A stretch of 64,000 nucleotides of DNA from Salpingoeca rosetta (lineage: Eukaryota > Protista > Choanoflagellata). The DNA lies in NCBI GenBank assembly GCA_033442325.1, contig JAWQFM010000003.1:93873-157872 (forward strand). Direction: 5' to 3'. Position 1 is the first letter of the stretch, and each line of letters opens with the position of its first letter. Below the pieces are notes generated by a model. The model saw nothing but the letters and a program-made list of their open reading frames with translations, was not told where the DNA came from and did not search any database. Both the position numbers and the translations under genes were made by a program. Shown here piece after piece: positions 37,021-49,741 of the stretch.

Positions 37021-41153
<4,133 letters not shown>

Positions 41154-41286: not shown

Positions 41287-41557
41287 GACGAATTTTTTTT
41301 TTTGGTTGCGTTCGGTTCGCTTTTCGTTGTTTGCTGTTGTTGTTGGCAACGTTGTTGTTGACTCAGGTTCACGCACACAACAACCCACGAAAGCATCATC
41401 CGCATCATCCACGACACCACCTCATCCGCATCATCCACTCAGCGCTGACAACCAAACCAGTCTCAGCAAACACAACAGTTGCACAACACAGCTGCCCACG
41501 AGTCAAACCAACAGCCAAACACTCAAAGAGCAGCGGCTGGCCGTACGTCTCACAGCA

Positions 41558-43882
41558 ATGGAGGCGGCATATGTGAAGAAGGCGTTGGGGACGACGCTGA
41601 CGGATGCGCTGTCCCTGCTGGCTGTGTATCGGCCAGAGGATCCCGTGGAGTGGCTTGCAGACTACCTGCGCCACGAGGACAAGCGCCAACGCATCATCGC
41701 CGTGAAGAGGGAGGAGCAAGAAAAGCGGGCAAAGATCTTGAAGAAGGCCCAAGAAGAAGAGGAGCGGCTGGCAGAGCTCAAGGTGCACGCGTTGACACAC
41801 TGCAGCGCCTCTGTGGCATTGCAACCTTTCTCATTGCAGGTTCAACACTCCCAGTCAATGTGCGCAAATCACGGTTCTGCAATGTGTTCTCACCGTCTCC
41901 GATTCTGCGCGTGTTCTTGTGCTGTTGTTCCCAGAGGGAGGAGGAGCGCCTGGCCAACCTGCGCAAGCCAAACCAGTTCCAGCTCGACTGCATGGCTTTC
42001 CTGCAAGAGGTGTGTATGCGCGTGTATGCGTGTGCGTGTGCGTGTGTCTGTGTGTGTGCGTGTGCGTGTGCGTGTGCGTGTGCGTGATACATGTGCATGT
42101 GCGTGTGCGTGTATGCGTGTGTGTGTGCGTGTGCGTGTGTGTGTGTGTGTGCGTGTGCGTGTGCGTGTGCGTGTGCGTGCGTGTGCGTGTGCGTGTGCGG
42201 GTGCGGGTGCGTGTGCGTGATGCTGTTGTGTATGCGTGATTGCAGTGCCAGCAGCGGTCAGACCGTGTCGCACGTGCTGCTTTCGCTTGAATTGATCTGA
42301 TCCATTGTGGTGGTGATTGGCCGACGCACTCTGCCTCAGATCACGGAGCTCGAGAAGAAGCTCAAGAACGAGGACAAATCTGTGCAAGAGATTGGCGAAG
42401 CCGTCATGCAGGAATCCCGCAAGAGCATGACACACATGCAGCTCAGCGAAGAGGTGCGTGCCCGCAGTACAGCGGCCCGAACACGTCTGTACACTTGGCT
42501 GTGCACACATACACGCCGATATGTCTCAACCCCACCTTTATTCTTCATTCTTCCCCACATACCGCACGACCATAACCACCACTCTCACAACCCTCCACAA
42601 TGCTTGTTCTCACCCCTGTGATGACGGCTGCTGGTCCGATTCCTCCGCAGGCGAAGGCGCTGGTGGAGGAGCCACCAAAGGCGATCCAGCAGCTCATTAA
42701 GGCCGGCATGGTCATCAGCGGATATCCGCTCGAGAAGCTCGAGAACTGGAGCGACATCTCCGAAGTTGTCCTCAACGGTGTGTATACACACAGACACAGA
42801 CATACACACAGACACAGACACAGACACAGACACAGACACAGACACACAGACACACACCCACACAGACATACACACAGATACACAGACACACGCACCGCGG
42901 TGCGTGTGTGCGCTGATCAAGTTGTTTGGGTTCCAGGCGTGCACAGCTGCACAGTCCACACCATGCTTCTCACACCTTATTCATCTTACACACACGGATG
43001 GTGAGCAGACTATGCACTGACGCGCTATGAGACGCTTGATGTGATGGCGGTTGCCAACAAGCACGACATCAAGGACGCTGTGGAGATGGTGGATGGCATC
43101 GACTACCTTGCCCGCCCTGTTCAGAAACACCCATTGGGCCCATTGGCCACACGCTACCACACGGTCTGTCATGTGCTATGTGTCTGCGTGTGCATGTACT
43201 TGCAAGTGTGTGTGTGTTTGCGTGTTGGTTCATTGTCCTTGTTCTGCAGCCTCGCACGAGAGGCCGTCGACATATCCACCGCACTTCCCAGTGCCACGCC
43301 ACACCACCTCACGTCACACCACACCATGCAACTGCCCAATCACCTCCACCCCCACCCCAACACCACCACCACCACCACCACCGCCAGTTTGTGCGTGCGG
43401 CGCTGCAGTCGTTTGGATACGAGCCATCGCAGTTTCTCTCGCTGGAATCTGTGGAGGAGGACAGGCAGACGTTCCAGCGAACCATCTGGCGCATGCCCGA
43501 AGAGGTGGAGAAGGTGCTTGATCTTGACAAGGACGGCGACACAGAGGCGTTGCGCGAGGAGAAGAAGAGAATACTGTCGACAATGGCTGGCCTGGACAGG
43601 CGGGTGCTGCCCAAGGAGATTACATCCAAGCTCATGCACGTCGAAGTCTGGTGGAAGTCAGCGGTACGTTTGAAAATGGGACAAGTCTTGCTCGCGTTGT
43701 GTGCATGTGTGTGCATGTGTGTGTGTATGTGTGTGCATGTGTGTGTGCATGTGTGTGCATGTGTGTGCATGTGTGTGCTTGTGATGAGACAGGCACGCAT
43801 TGCCCCCCTCCCCAACACACATTCCCATACTTGATCCCCACCCAACCTTCAACATCTCCTCCCCTCCACCTCCACACATACA

Positions 43883-43940
<58 letters not shown>

Positions 43941-45306
43941 ACCACGTGATTATTGCATTGTTCAGGAGAACGAGGAGACGGATGCGGATGCGTCGCTGAT
44001 CATGTTCAGCGAGCACGGGCAGCCCATCGACAGCGTGTACCATCTTGTCCGCCACAGCAAGGACAACGCCATCAAACACATGGGTGACATGGGTGAGGAG
44101 ACAGACGCTGAATACTTCACCTTCGACCTCCCAAAGCTGGCAAAGGTGCGCTGCGTGCGTGTGTGTGTGTCGCGTGCCTGTCAAGTTTGTGTTGTGTTGT
44201 TCAACAGCGCACTTGCTGTGCCAAATCATTTGCACGACACCACGCACCATCCACACACCATACTCACACCACTCTCCTCAACAATGTACACATCTGTATG
44301 CAACGCACGCCAGAATGTGGATGTGATTGGGGTGGTGCTGAACGTGGCGACGGATGGAGAAAGCCTGGAGCACACAGAGGCGTGTGGCATTCGCATTTAC
44401 CCATCAACTGGCGACACCAACGGTGGTGCTGGTGGTGGTGGCGCAGACAGCGCAGACAAGAAGGAGGAGGAACAGGAAGAAGAAGCAGGGGGTGACCAGG
44501 AGAAGAAGGACGATGAAGGCGAGGGCGGTGGCGATGACAAGGAGGGTGGTGACGAAGAAGAAGAAGAAGACAAGAAAGAAGAAGAAGACAAGGCAGAAGG
44601 TGACAAGGAAGACGAGGAAGATGGTGAGGATGGTGATGAGGGCGATGAGCAACAGAGCAGCAAGCCTGCATCGAAGAAGCCCTCCATGGCGCCACCTGCG
44701 ATGGTGCCGCCAAAGGCCCCGCCCGTCCTCACCATGAGCCTGGATGCGCATCTCATTGACAAGCATGAGGTGCTCATGACGCTGCTGCACCGTGATCAGG
44801 AGGACCCGGACCTGTGGCACATTGTCGGTGTTGGCGAGCAAGTCAAGGGCGAGTGGCGCGAGAAGGAAGAGTCACAGAACTTTCTCAACGCACTGCCGCT
44901 GGGCCAGCGCTACATTGAGCTGCTTGGCATCCGCCACGTGGACCACAGCGGGGAGAAGGTCATGCACCCGTTTAAGATGGTTCCTGGCGACTTTCTTGAA
45001 GTGCCGGCCCTTGCGGTGGAGCACCCTGTCGTCATTGGCATGGGCTGGGATGTCGATCCAGATGTCGCCATGGATTTGGACTGCGGGCTTGCCGTTTACT
45101 CAAAGGGACAGGTCAGTGTGTGCACGATGATGGCAGCGCGGCGGTGATGATGTTGGAGAGGCGGGTGGGTATGCAGTGGAACGTGATTTGCAGTGGTGAC
45201 TGGTAGCTGACGGCTGGCAGCCGTGGTTGTGGCCCATGTGCTTGAAAGATCTTGACTTGACTTGTTCTTCCTCGTTCTCACCGTTCTCACACATTTCTCT
45301 GCACAC

Positions 45307-45397
<91 letters not shown>

Positions 45398-46081
45398 TGT
45401 CCACAGCGAACGGACTACTGCGACTTTGAGAAGTTGGTGTCGAACGACAAAGCCATTGAGCACCAGGGCGACAACCGTGATGGCGAGGGCGAAGGCGATG
45501 ATGAGAGCATCATTGTCGAGTTCAGCAAGCTCGATCCAGAGACAGACACGCTGTTCCTGTACGCTGCCGTGTATGAGGGCGGTGCTCTGCGTGATGTGGA
45601 GAATGTTCATATTCGCATGCTCAGCAAACGCGGCGGAAAGCAGAAGGTGGGAATGCTGATTGCTGCTGCTGCTGTTTGGGTGTGGTTGTTGTCGTGGCTG
45701 ATTGCTGTTTGCTGTTGCGTCGTCGTTTGTGGTGGTTTGCTTGATGTGTCCGGTTGGGCTTAATTTGGCTTGTTGTTGGATGTGCTTGTTTGGTGTTTTC
45801 TGTGTTGCCTGCTGGGGTGCTTGCTTATGTGCATGTGTGCCTCCACACACTCGCTCACGTACTCCCGACCCCATGTCCATCCCCAAACGCCGCAATCACA
45901 ACAACAGGAGATCTGCCGGTTCTCGCTCGACTGGCTGGCCAAGGTTGAGGACGACACTGCCGTCATCCTGGCCAAAATCTCGCGTACACCCGAGGGGGCG
46001 TGGCTCTTCCAGACCATTGGCACCACGGCACCTGGCAGGACCATCGAGGAGCTGGAGAGCAGGCTCACAGAGCTGCTCTGA
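41558..46081 (+). CDS. Dpy-30 motif + coiled coil + dynein MTBD-like region + two TerD domains (10 exons)
   Basis: [34 protein letters not shown] (Dpy-30); GMGWD...DLDCG...[19 protein letters not shown]...EICRFSL...GAWLFQTIG (TerD); a degenerate first TerD (DADASLIMF...AIKHMGD). All nine GT-AG junctions keep frame. Confidence 0.8.
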
Positions 46082-46937: not shown

Positions 46938-49029
46938 TCAGGAGCGGTTGATGCGGGGTGAGGGCGGTGTTGGCAGCTGGCGAACAGCGGTCGGTGGTGT
47001 GTGCATGTGTTGATCGCGATGACCGCCGCGGACACCAGCGCCTTTCTTCCTTCTCGGCGCAACTGCCGCTGCCGTTGCCCTTGATGCCGGGCTCATGCCG
47101 TCACCACCACCATCAACACGACCACCGTCACCAACGTGGCGCCCAGCAGCCCTGTGCGGATCAGCATCGTCCTCGTTGTCATCAACACCAACATCCTGAC
47201 CACGCATGGGGCCACTCTGTGCACCGTGGTCACGGCCATCCACGCCCAAGCCATGGTGGCCGGTGGTGCTGTCACCGCTGCTGCTGTTGTCGTTGTTATT
47301 GGTGTGATGGCTTCGACCCGTGCTGGTAGTCTCGTATCTCTCCCAGCTCCTGCGCACGCGGTGGTTGGAGGAGAGCACGGGCCCGCGTGGTGGCGATGGC
47401 CGATATGCCTCATCACCGCCATCCCGATGATGGTGGTGATGGTGGTGGTGGTGATCAGGTGACGCCTGGTGTTGTGGTCTTCTCTTGCTGGTGTCAGTGC
47501 TGTTGCCACCACTCAATACTTCCCCGCCTTCCCTGCTGCCGTGTATGCGCCCATGCAAAGAGGGCGGTGGCGGCGATGATGTTGGTGACGGTGATGATGG
47601 CGCGATGGGCGGCACGACCGGGTAGTTGGCTGAGCCCAGCCGCCTGCGTCCAGACCCCCGCGCAGATGCAGACACGAGCCGCAGCCGCTCCGTCTCCCGC
47701 TGTATGTACTCGGCATCGGTGCCCACACCCGCAGTTGTTGGCGACGCTGCCGGGCGCGCGTATCTGCGGTGGCGCGTGCGTGACGCGCGCGTGGACTGGC
47801 GGGGATCCCGGGGCGGCGACATATCCGCCACAACGACACCACCACCGCCGCCGCCGCTGCTGTTACCAGCGGTGCTGCGGAGTGGGGATGTGACAGACGG
47901 GGTGCGCAGGCGACGGGTGGCGGAGGGTGGTGTTGCTGGCGATGTTGGGGAGAGTGGGGATGACCCGGGCTCGTGTGGCGCTGACGGTGACGGTTGTGTT
48001 GTTCGCGAGTGCCGTGGACCGCCCACGGCGTGCGGAGGGCGGGGACTGGCAAGCGTTGTGACGCTGTTGGGCGTTCTCGATCCAGATGAGCTTGTGCGCT
48101 GTGCAGTGTCGGGAGATGCCGCGTGGTCTTGGCTGTTGGCGGCATGGTGCTTGGCTGGCGATGGTGTTGCGCGAGCGTTTCGCAGTTGCATGACAAGCTC
48201 GGCTTGGCGGCGGGAGTATCGCGAGTTGTCGTCGCGTAACCGCTGCACCTCTTGTTCCAGGGCGGCGCATTGCTTGTGCAGACTTGTCTGTTCCGTTGTC
48301 ATTGTGCGGATGACGGCGTCTCGCTCCGCCACTGTCTCGTCCATGGCGGCCAGCTTGGCCCGAAGCATGTTGAGCTCTTGCTCTAGCGCATGGCGTGCTT
48401 GTTGGTGTGCGTGGCACTGCTGCTCCAACGCCTCGATCTTTGCTTCCTGTGCTGCTGTTGCGTTACAGGACGGTGGTTGTGAGGGCGTGTGTGCGTGTGT
48501 GTGTGTGTGTGTGAGTGTGTGAGTGTGCATGTGCATGTGCATGTGTGTGTTTGTTTGTGTGAGTGTGCATGTGTGTGTTGTGTGCGTGCGTGTGTGTGAG
48601 GCGATAGGCAGGAGATTCATATGTCACCAACCTGCAGTTGTCGGTTCTGGTTGTTGTTGTTGTTGTTGCTGTTCCGTGTCTGCATCTTGCAACAGCGTCA
48701 ACTTGTAGTTCAGATCTACATGCATACATGATACGGGCATGCGTGTGGGTGTGAGTGGTGTTCAAGCTGTCGTGTTAAAGCCATGCGAAGGAGGCCCACC
48801 AGGCAAAAGCCCGCAAGCAAGCGAAGAAGAGCGCAGAGGAGGACGGGGGAGGGCCCAGCCAACGCACGCAAACACAGCAAGGCGGGCACCACCACACCGA
48901 ACCTGTGTTCTTGTCTCGGAGTTGGGCAATCTCCTTGCGTAGCGCCTCCAGTGTCTTCTTATGCTCCGTCTTGAGGAACTCAATGACGGAGGAGGCGACC
49001 TCATCATCGTTGCCGCGTCCTGCCGGCAT
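46938..49029 (-). CDS. CCDC92/CCDC74-family coiled-coil protein with disordered S/P/R-rich tail
   Basis: SVIEFLKTEHKKTLEALRKEIAQLRDKNT|DLNYKL matches the CCDC92/74 N-terminal motif (FLQxEHxxTLxGLHxEIxxLQxxCxDLxxEL). Confidence 0.65.
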
Positions 49030-49203
49030 CTCTCCCAATACCAGGCCGCAACTGTGGTCGTGGTCGGTGGTTGTTGTTGTTGTGAAGCAGCAGAGGAGGA
49101 GCAGGCAGGAATCAAAACAAAACTCGAGAAAAGGAATGCACAAAGCAGAAAAACAAGCGAAGCAACAACAGAGGACAGCAGCGCCCAACCCACGTGTGCC
49201 ACC

Positions 49204-49298
<95 letters not shown>

Positions 49299-49610
49299 NN
49301 NNNNNNNNNNNNNNNNNNNNNNNNNNNNNNNNNNNNNNNNNNNNNNNNNNNNNNNNNNNNNNNNNNNNNNNNNNNNNNNNNNNNNNNNNNNNNNNNNNNN
49401 NNNNNNNNNNNNNNNNNNNNNNNNNNNNNNNNNNNNNNNNNNNNNNNNNNNNNNNNNNNNNNNNNNNNNNNNNNNNNNNNNNNNNNNNNNNNNNNNNNNN
49501 NNNNNNNNNNNNNNNNNNNNNNNNNNNNNNNNNNNNNNNNNNNNNNNNNNNNNNNNNNNNNNNNNNNNNNNNNNNNNNNNNNNNNNNNNNNNNNNNNNNN
49601 NNNNNNNNNN
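49299..49610. other. Assembly gap (other gaps at 51387-51486 and 62043-62443)
   Basis: Runs of N flanked by microsatellites. Confidence 0.99.
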
Positions 49611-49619
49611 ACGTACGTA

Positions 49620-49697
<78 letters not shown>

Positions 49698-49741
49698 CAC
49701 ATACATGCACACACACACACATACATGCACTGATGGGGCAG

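Follow-up and report, generated by a model that had tools for sequence, protein, structure and literature searches.

The choanoflagellate Salpingoeca rosetta carries, on the 64 kb stretch of DNA analysed here (the window), the gene PTSG_02177, whose product joins an N-terminal Dpy-30 motif to a helical region and two C-terminal TerD domains. Judged from sequence and predicted structure, PTSG_02177 is most likely a long version of the radial-spoke neck protein RSP2/DYDC as it occurs in choanoflagellates. Public databases already list the gene with its Pfam domains, so the architecture itself can be read there; in the literature searched, no protein combining Dpy-30 with TerD was described, in agreement with an earlier note made from the DNA letters. 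What is new is the assignment to the RSP2/DYDC family, the recognition of a helical domain resembling the dynein microtubule-binding domain (MTBD) as a feature of RSP2, and the connection with a tandem TerD concealed in Chlamydomonas RSP1.

Gene structure of PTSG_02177

The gene model was read on the + strand from position 41558. The coding region spans 41558-46081 (+) and, with the stop codon included, comprises 2364 nt in ten exons encoding 787 amino acids (aa). Exons 1-5 lie at 41558-41782, 41935-42009, 42340-42453, 42651-42777 and 43009-43163, and exons 6-10 at 43388-43663, 43966-44145, 44314-45111, 45407-45646 and 45908-46081, all on the + strand. Every intron has GT-AG borders and the reading frame is continuous across all ten exons, as the earlier note had claimed. 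The translation is identical, letter for letter, to the NCBI entry 'hypothetical protein PTSG_02177 [Salpingoeca rosetta]' (P0001), which UniRef labels 'TerD domain-containing protein' and whose locus in the public assembly is GL832959.1 of GCA_000188695.1. A search for contigs encoding P0001 returned the genomic record only.

No stop or start signal is present at the exon junctions, and around each of the nine junctions the protein aligns to intron-free orthologues derived from transcripts with no gap or with one no longer than 2 aa. Because the stretches flanking the junctions align in this way, the splicing of PTSG_02177 is supported. A search of sequencing runs identified 20 holders, several of them with 0.55-0.57 of the sampled words, near the estimated share of exons plus untranslated regions; none of these runs is recorded as RNA, and the figure is a hint only. 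Judged from these genomic and orthologous sequences, PTSG_02177 is a real, single, spliced gene. The recurrence of the Dpy-30 and TerD architecture in other holozoans, described below, likewise points to one gene and to an old holozoan family.

Some features of the introns were also recorded. Intron 7 (44146-44313) is 168 nt long, in frame and stop-free, and its retention would add 56 aa to the first TerD domain; the orthologues have no insertion at this position. Introns 2, 4, 6 and 8 are filled by long (GT)n/(CA)n and related microsatellites (e.g., 42010-42240, 42790-42900, 43690-43940 and 45300-45395), and the segment 43694-43786 in intron 6 is a GT/CA microsatellite.

Domain architecture

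Domains were assigned with the Pfam cut-offs of 22 bits for Dpy-30 (PF05186) and 25.3 bits for TerD (PF02342), together with an AlphaFold2 (AF2) model of the full protein, which has a predicted local distance difference test score (pLDDT) of 71. From the N- to the C-terminus, the protein consists of five parts: a Dpy-30 motif, a long helix, a dynein MTBD-like helical domain, a degenerate TerD domain (TerD1) and a canonical TerD domain (TerD2). The Dpy-30 motif, a dimerisation and docking domain, occupies aa 2-40 (41561..41677, +) and scores 45.6-50.6 bits. It is followed by a long charged helix or coiled coil at aa 46-110 (41693..42369, +, across introns 1-2), which the AF2 model renders as helices 29-85 and 89-110. 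The MTBD-like domain, recognised by structure search and sequence profile, covers aa ~111-244 (42370..43423, +, across introns 3-5). Its most conserved piece is a motif ending in (Y/F)H at aa 219-231 (43122-43160, +), which is invariant in the orthologue alignment.

The C-terminal half is occupied by the two TerD domains, for which a whole-protein Pfam scan gives 108 bits over two stretches. The better stretch, aa 623-773, lies in TerD2 (aa 611-787; 44992..46078, +, across introns 8-9). The second corresponds to TerD1 (aa ~313-562; 43628..44847, +, across introns 6-7), which is predicted as a beta-sandwich in the AF2 model; exon 7 alone gives a sub-threshold TerD match of 18.5 bits. A loop of TerD1 holds an acidic, low-complexity insert (aa ~417-520; 44410..44721, +) identified by its charge and low pLDDT: aa 419-520 include 41 D+E among 102 residues with a net charge of -28, and pLDDT is below 50 over aa 417-515. 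The insert is missing in every orthologue examined and is thus specific to S. rosetta. MORN repeats were not matched in PTSG_02177 by Pfam or regular-expression scans, and the Pfam scan found no AAA+ domain.

The layout agrees well with the earlier note, which had described the N-terminal Dpy-30 motif, a degenerate TerD with an acidic insert of ~90 aa, and a canonical TerD with a DLD and an acidic motif (now placed at aa 638-640 and 671-683, respectively). The helical domain noted there is present as well, and can now be specified as a dynein MTBD-like fold of the kind seen in Chlamydomonas and Trypanosoma brucei RSP2.

The N-terminal half resembles RSP2 and DYDC proteins

A profile of the family was searched against all PDB sequences, and the positions given here are profile positions. 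The best matches were mouse DYDC2 (1-87, E 1.4e-10), human DYDC2 (1-84, E 2.1e-9) and DYDC1 (1-128, E 5e-7). The similarity to DYDC1 and DYDC2 runs past the Dpy-30 motif into the flanking helix. DPY30 proper was matched over the motif only (3-43, E ~2e-4), RSP2 of T. brucei and Chlamydomonas over 3-65 and 2-79 (E 8.6e-4), and NME5/NDK and AK7 over the motif only, with E-values of 0.009 or weaker and 0.04, respectively. Both DYDC2 and DYDC1 have been modelled as parts of the mammalian radial-spoke head-neck (8wzb, 8j07, 9fqr), and the Dpy-30 part of PTSG_02177 aligns structurally with mouse DYDC2 in the head-neck structure 8wzb_A (VIA Z 6.1, 44% identity).

The full AF2 model was also used in an unbiased structure search against 48,161 PDB representatives. 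T. brucei RSP2 (9e5c_2e) aligned over 255 residues within model positions 1-294 (Z 6.1), and Chlamydomonas RSP2 (7jrj_I) aligned model positions 11-192 with chain residues 18-534 (Z 7.0). PTSG_02177 resembles RSP2 of Chlamydomonas, Trypanosoma and Tetrahymena, as well as DYDC1/2, in having an N-terminal Dpy-30 motif followed by a helix. DYDC1/2 proteins, at ~175 aa, end after this helix, whereas PTSG_02177 goes on to its C-terminal tandem TerD.

The C-terminal part of Chlamydomonas RSP2 is variable and reported to bind calmodulin. RSP2 orthologues are alike only in their N-terminal part (PMC12399478), which fits a protein with a lineage-specific C-terminal 'effector'; the C-terminal part of PTSG_02177 is variable in the same sense. 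In the spoke, an amphipathic helix of RSP3, situated beneath the head, anchors RSP2 and RSP23 by their Dpy-30 domains (PMC3494852). In bovine sperm, DYDC2 occurs in the heads of radial spokes 1 and 2, and CAMK4 nestles between RSPH1, DYDC2 and PPIL6 (PMC11779644). Of the earlier note's proposal of a radial-spoke-type docking module, the similarity to RSP2/DYDC is now backed by both profile and fold, while a flagellar location of PTSG_02177 is still what we infer from that similarity.

A dynein MTBD-like domain within RSP2

The helical region was modelled alone (aa 86-322; pLDDT 86.9, predicted template modelling score 0.84). In an unbiased search with the MTBD-like domain, the top five chains were dynein MTBDs (Z 7.5-9.3, root-mean-square deviation (rmsd) 2.5-3.4, 120-126 residues aligned). 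They were followed by 9fqr_Xl (Z 6.8), 9ya2_L (Z 6.0) and T. brucei RSP2 (Z 5.6, 169 residues aligned), and the remaining chains had Z of at most 4.9. Residues 461-534 of Chlamydomonas RSP2 (7jrj_I) match the same domain. The best of Foldseek's candidates was 7jtk_C (Z 10.6, rmsd 3.3, 154 residues aligned, chain residues 337-586). We take 7jtk_C to be Chlamydomonas RSP2 because the RSP2 chain of 7jrj matches this domain at the overlapping residues 461-534, and because chains A and B of 7jtk appear to be RSP1. By fold, therefore, Chlamydomonas and T. brucei RSP2 have the MTBD-like domain in common with PTSG_02177.

Sequence comparison points in the same direction as the fold, at low scores. Ten of the 11 PDB matches of the domain profile at E <=10 were dynein heavy-chain MTBDs (E 0.005-1, best 0.005), and the signature PP...GY...W...F...D is weakly common to the two groups (E 0.005-0.05). 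The domain has the fold of the dynein heavy-chain stalk tip, a six-helix bundle at the end of a helical hairpin, but the AAA+ motor and the long antiparallel stalk of the dynein heavy chain have no counterpart in PTSG_02177. Dynein MTBDs have a basic microtubule-binding face. The MTBD-like domain carries a net charge of -8, and the basic residues of dynein helix 1 are not kept in the profile alignment. Microtubule binding was considered and is unlikely for so acidic a domain, which for the same reason is better regarded as a protein-contact module of the spoke.

Two further observations concern the structures matched. Neither 9fqr_Xl, from the bovine sperm 96-nm repeat, nor 9ya2_L, from the Toxoplasma intraconoidal microtubule, is dynein-heavy-chain-like, by length and by entry, respectively; the MTBD-like fold may thus be more widespread among microtubule-associated proteins. 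The 4583-aa chain 9fqr_Hl, one of the ten profile matches, bears the label 'Radial spoke head protein 9 homolog' but is evidently a dynein heavy chain with the same MTBD region as DNAH10; the label is probably wrong.

The TerD tandem and its putative Ca2+ site

TerD2 closely resembles the bacterial TerD/TerZ/SCP2 proteins (PF02342; e.g., Klebsiella 2KXT and Streptomyces 3IBZ) in fold and in its Ca2+-site motif. In VIA comparisons, it aligned with SCP2 (9a6r_B) at Z 21.2, 2qz7 at Z 16.1, 3ibz at Z 16.0, 2qng at Z 15.9 and Klebsiella TerD 2kxt at Z 13.3; phmmer gave E 4e-14 to 3ibz and 2e-13 to 2kxt. The bacterial proteins are single domains of ~190 aa, whereas PTSG_02177 has two copies fused to an axonemal docking module.

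The Ca2+ site was recognised by the acidic motif GDN(R/L)TG(E)G(D/E)GDDE together with an upstream DxD. Both elements are present in TerD2 and not in TerD1, where the motif is reduced and a DADAS is kept upstream. The TerD2 motif (aa 671-683; 45467..45505, +) aligns position by position with GDNRTGEGDGDDE of Klebsiella TerD 2kxt, an entry whose title refers to calcium-binding properties, and the partner DLD (aa 638-640; 45073-45081, +) aligns with the DLD of that protein. Across seven close relatives, the motif is unchanged save for one E-to-D change in P0008, and in the more distant P0012 clade (described below) it is kept as GDNMTGEVEGDDE. TerD2 therefore retains a complete acidic, predicted Ca2+-site motif under strong conservation, and the conservation of these surface acidic residues suggests that metal binding matters. 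True Ca2+ sensing by PTSG_02177 would go a step further and, from sequence, we regard it as somewhat doubtful.

A tandem TerD in Chlamydomonas RSP1

The best Foldseek match of the whole model was 7JTK chain A, from Chlamydomonas radial spoke 1 (E 1.2e-12), which ranked ahead of the TerD crystal structures. By VIA, model positions 314-787 aligned with residues 14-550 of this chain (Z 16.9, 347 residues); the rmsd of 15.8 is to be expected if both domains match in a different relative orientation. A published benchmark gives chain 7jtkB, a radial spoke protein, a length of 801 residues (PMC13090124). Of the spoke proteins, only RSP1 reaches this length, and chains A and B of 7jtk are accordingly assigned to RSP1.

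RSP1 is a MORN-repeat protein (PMC6678824), and the 7jtk_A match was at one time suspected to be a beta-hairpin/MORN artefact; this idea was dropped after the sequence-profile match to RSP1. A broader tandem-TerD profile (A4), built from 14 sequences that include free tandem-TerD proteins, matched 'Flagellar radial spoke protein 1' (814 aa; 7jrj, 7jtk, 8glv) with E 6.7e-12 and 47.8 bits. The matching pieces are collinear: RSP1 residues 13-170 correspond to TerD1, 351-400 to TerD strands and 522-549 to the C-terminal W-F-G...G-t-eelE motif. Chlamydomonas RSP1 (7JTK chain A / 7JRJ chain F, residues ~13-550) thus carries a degenerate tandem TerD, without the Ca2+ motif, in a solved spoke head. 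No paper in the literature searched links TerD with radial spokes.

The TerD-like module of RSP1 is collinear with that of PTSG_02177 and is located in the spoke head beside the neck. The two proteins are otherwise dissimilar: RSP1 has MORN repeats and no Dpy-30, whereas PTSG_02177 has Dpy-30 and no MORN. Only the TerD module is common to them, and they are not orthologues. That two different neighbours at the spoke head-neck are fused to the same module suggests that the module works there.

Distribution of the architecture and origin of the TerD part

The family profile was run in an exhaustive HMMER search, which returned 2472 matches at E <=0.001; the best 150 of these were re-scanned domain by domain. 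Four other choanoflagellates have complete open reading frames (ORFs) of 689-745 aa with Pfam Dpy-30 and TerD domains, 46-69% identical to PTSG_02177; three of these are labelled as de novo transcripts (P0003, P0004, P0008) and the fourth (P0002) bears a gene-model name. The presence of both domains in single choanoflagellate ORFs supports the earlier note's reading that a single gene combines a Dpy-30 module of the radial-spoke kind with two TerD domains. The architecture is also present in the single-cell genome of Choanoflagellata sp. UC4 (P0013, 1004 aa). Outside the close choanoflagellate set, Dpy-30 and/or helical parts occur in few of the best 150 of the 2472 matches, and no named animal protein was found among the family members in this re-scan.

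Several more distant holders were identified. The ichthyosporean Chromosphaera perkinsii encodes a 675-aa protein (P0020) with Dpy-30 and two TerD domains by Pfam, and Pigoraptor vietnamica a 561-aa protein (P0018) with the helical part and two TerD domains, the N-terminus of which is probably cut. The P0012 clade (P0012, P0158, P0159), ~26% identical, is represented by mRNA-like Logan contigs of 2.1-2.3 kb, each with one uninterrupted ORF holding both domains; P0012 is present in six sequencing runs, and a word search with profile A3 returned this clade only. On the 12-kb contig L008, a Dpy-30 ORF lies 180 bp upstream of a helical-plus-TerD ORF on the same strand, and the pair looks like one gene divided by a prokaryote-style gene caller. 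Long metagenomic proteins (P0010, P0022, P0043, P0106) combine the helical domain with several TerD copies. P0010 (1244 aa; contig L009 of a metagenomic eukaryote), for instance, has an MTBD-like helical domain and four TerD stretches, with no detectable Dpy-30. An EF-hand and TerD fusion was also seen (P0046, 848 aa). Searches of the ESM Atlas by shape and by features gave nothing useful.

The best named matches outside the family are eukaryotic tandem or multi-TerD proteins of Thecamonas ('stress protein'), Amoebophrya, Sappinia, Balamuthia and Ploeotia. The family profile spans both TerD domains and their linker in one stretch, e.g., at positions 311-674 for Sappinia P0026; the matches of ~190 aa are bacterial TerZ/TerD. 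Dictyostelium CABP1 is counted with the eukaryotic tandem-TerD proteins. The free 'stress proteins' of Sappinia, Balamuthia, Thecamonas and Amoebophrya align with PTSG_02177 over both TerD domains and the linker but lack the Dpy-30 motif, the helix and the MTBD-like domain, and some come from organisms without flagella. In a FastTree phylogeny of TerD domains, the TerD2 domains of the family group with long multi-domain eukaryotic proteins, apart from bacterial TerZ; because support is weak (80), no donor or order is drawn from this tree.

The nearest other TerD relatives are therefore eukaryotic tandem proteins, which argues against a recent bacterial graft. The earlier note had envisaged a bacterial-type metal sensor grafted onto an axonemal module, and this part of it is not supported in that form: the nearest named TerD relatives are eukaryotic, the fusion is common to choanoflagellates, an ichthyosporean and Pigoraptor, and a tandem TerD is already present in RSP1. 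The domain is of a mostly bacterial type, but a eukaryotic tandem-TerD gene most probably supplied it to the fusion. The Dpy-30/TerD fusion dates back at least to the holozoan protists sampled.

Promoter and neighbouring genes

PTSG_02177 shares a divergent promoter of ~400 bp with a gene of zf-CCCH/DUS3L type, whose CCCH zinc fingers were identified by Pfam at 39555-40454 (-). Two matches to motifs of RFX type lie in this region: the RFX monomer motif GTTGCCAA at 41343-41350 (-), 208 bp upstream of the ATG, and GTTGTCA, a form of GTTGYCA, at 41446-41452 (-), 106 bp upstream. The GTTGYCA motif occurs in 21.9% of the promoters of the conserved S. rosetta ciliome as against 2.0% of all promoters, and GTTGCCAA is the 8-mer whose mutation lowered the activity of the S. 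rosetta spag6 promoter (PMC10530576). Two putative RFX matches within 220 bp are unusual but not proof; they are suggestive only, because the whole window holds seven GTTGCCAA and 31 GTTGYCA.

Downstream, a CCDC92 domain (PF14916) was detected at 48775-49722 (-), with 28.9 bits against a cut-off of 28.3. Of the two cilia-linked neighbours proposed earlier, the CCDC92-like gene thus stands by a narrow margin, and no CCDC103 match emerged when the ORFs of 31.8-35.7 kb were scanned with Pfam.

Proposed role and alternative explanations

If PTSG_02177 is a spoke-neck protein, its Dpy-30 domain would pair with the Dpy-30 domain of NME5/RSP23 and dock on the amphipathic helix of RSPH3/RSP3, so that the protein would lie where head and neck of radial spokes 1 and 2 meet. 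The long helix and the MTBD-like domain would build the contact between neck and head through protein-protein interaction, with no microtubule binding. The tandem TerD would lie next to the MORN protein RSPH1, the place taken in Chlamydomonas by the tandem TerD that RSP1 itself carries. Ca2+ on TerD2 might then alter the stiffness or the contacts of the head-neck and so change the signal from the central pair to the dyneins. The TerD tandem would represent a third, built-in Ca2+ solution at a site where Chlamydomonas RSP2 reportedly binds calmodulin and where CAMK4 lies next to DYDC2 in mammals.

We consider it fairly probable that PTSG_02177 combines a spoke-neck RSP2/DYDC identity with a metal-binding TerD. 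A wider scenario is offered tentatively, and we would sooner bet against it than for it: the tandem TerD may be an ancient, hitherto unremarked building block of the spoke head-neck that resides in Chlamydomonas RSP1 and in the RSP2 of choanoflagellates, ichthyosporeans and Pigoraptor, and that disappeared on the stem lineage of animals. Such a pattern resembles a Rosetta-stone fusion. The intact TerD2 of choanoflagellates would then serve as the spoke's own Ca2+ sensor and switch the waveform without calmodulin.

Several observations weigh against assigning PTSG_02177 to the spoke neck or reading its TerD as a sensor. In sequence, PTSG_02177 is weakly similar to Chlamydomonas and T. brucei RSP2 (E 8.6e-4), and this similarity lies within the Dpy-30 region alone; the structural Z of 5.6-7 is modest for helical proteins. 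The identity of 7jtk_C as RSP2 was deduced as described above and not taken from the entry. PTSG_02177 is at most a candidate for the sole DYDC/RSP2-type gene of S. rosetta; a word search with its first 140 residues retrieved a fragment of 87 aa and nothing else. PTSG_02177 is named in no paper of the literature searched, nor in the supplements of the RFX paper. As to the TerD part, the domains of RSP1 are without the Ca2+ motif; in Pigoraptor and Chromosphaera the TerD2 motif is degenerate, and TerD1 retains more of the motif. Free tandem-TerD proteins exist in the amoebae Sappinia and Balamuthia, which have no flagella, so TerD itself is not a ciliary marker.

Some of these points feed the most durable of the alternatives, in which PTSG_02177 is a spoke-neck protein but its TerD tandem is a structural brick, as in RSP1, with any bound metal serving structure and no Ca2+ sensing. 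The tandem TerD of RSP1 lacks the acidic motif and is nevertheless stable in a solved spoke head, which means that a spoke TerD can be purely structural; TerD1 of S. rosetta is degenerate, and the TerD2 motif was lost in Pigoraptor and Chromosphaera. The TerD2 motif and DLD are, however, invariant or nearly so across choanoflagellate proteins that are only 46-69% identical overall, and both are kept in the P0012 clade. We therefore regard a purely structural tandem as unlikely, if deserving of serious attention.

A ciliary protein could also be docked elsewhere through its Dpy-30 motif, for example on CFAP91 in radial spoke 3 or in the central apparatus. Dpy-30 domains do anchor several different axonemal proteins, among them AK7 and EFCAB5 at CFAP91 in radial spoke 3 (PMC11779644), and matches of PTSG_02177 to AK7 and NME5 exist. 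These are weaker than the matches to DYDC2 and DYDC1, which are the best by sequence and reach into the flanking helix, and the fold is collinear with RSP2, including the MTBD-like domain. Docking at another site thus appears quite improbable, and a localisation in the neck is preferred.

A little less probable again is a non-ciliary function, in which PTSG_02177 would be a cytosolic or nuclear Ca2+-binding tandem-TerD protein of the stress type, using its Dpy-30 motif for dimerisation or for another Dpy-30-binding complex. Many protists, non-flagellate amoebae among them, have free tandem-TerD 'stress proteins', and Dpy-30 also works in COMPASS (matches to DPY30 reach E 2e-4). Against this reading stand the DYDC/RSP2-type N-terminus, the MTBD-like domain, the RFX site in the promoter and the tandem TerD already seen in a solved radial spoke. 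The named holders of the fusion include no non-flagellate, choanoflagellates and Pigoraptor being flagellates.

Lastly, a false joining of two adjacent genes, one for Dpy-30 and the helical part and one for TerD, is very improbable. The splicing of the S. rosetta gene is deduced from the genome and its orthologues, and prokaryote-style gene callers divide the orthologue on contig L008 into two, but de novo transcriptomes of other choanoflagellates, as well as six mRNA-like contigs, hold both domains in one complete ORF, and every exon junction is collinear with transcript-derived orthologues, with no stop or start signal.

Implications

How Ca2+ controls the ciliary beat by way of the radial spokes has long been an open question. 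Calmodulin bound to spoke proteins in Chlamydomonas and, recently, CAMK4 beside DYDC2 in mammals are the participants known so far; PTSG_02177 would put a different fold of Ca2+-binding type directly on a subunit of the neck. In S. rosetta this can be tested, since gene editing, reporter assays and an in situ map of the axoneme are available. The analysis also draws connections that were unlinked in the literature searched, between the long RSP2 of protists and the short DYDC of animals, between RSP2 and the MTBD-like domain, and between RSP1 and a tandem TerD. Choanoflagellates being the closest relatives of animals, these links together suggest how the spoke head-neck was remodelled toward animals.

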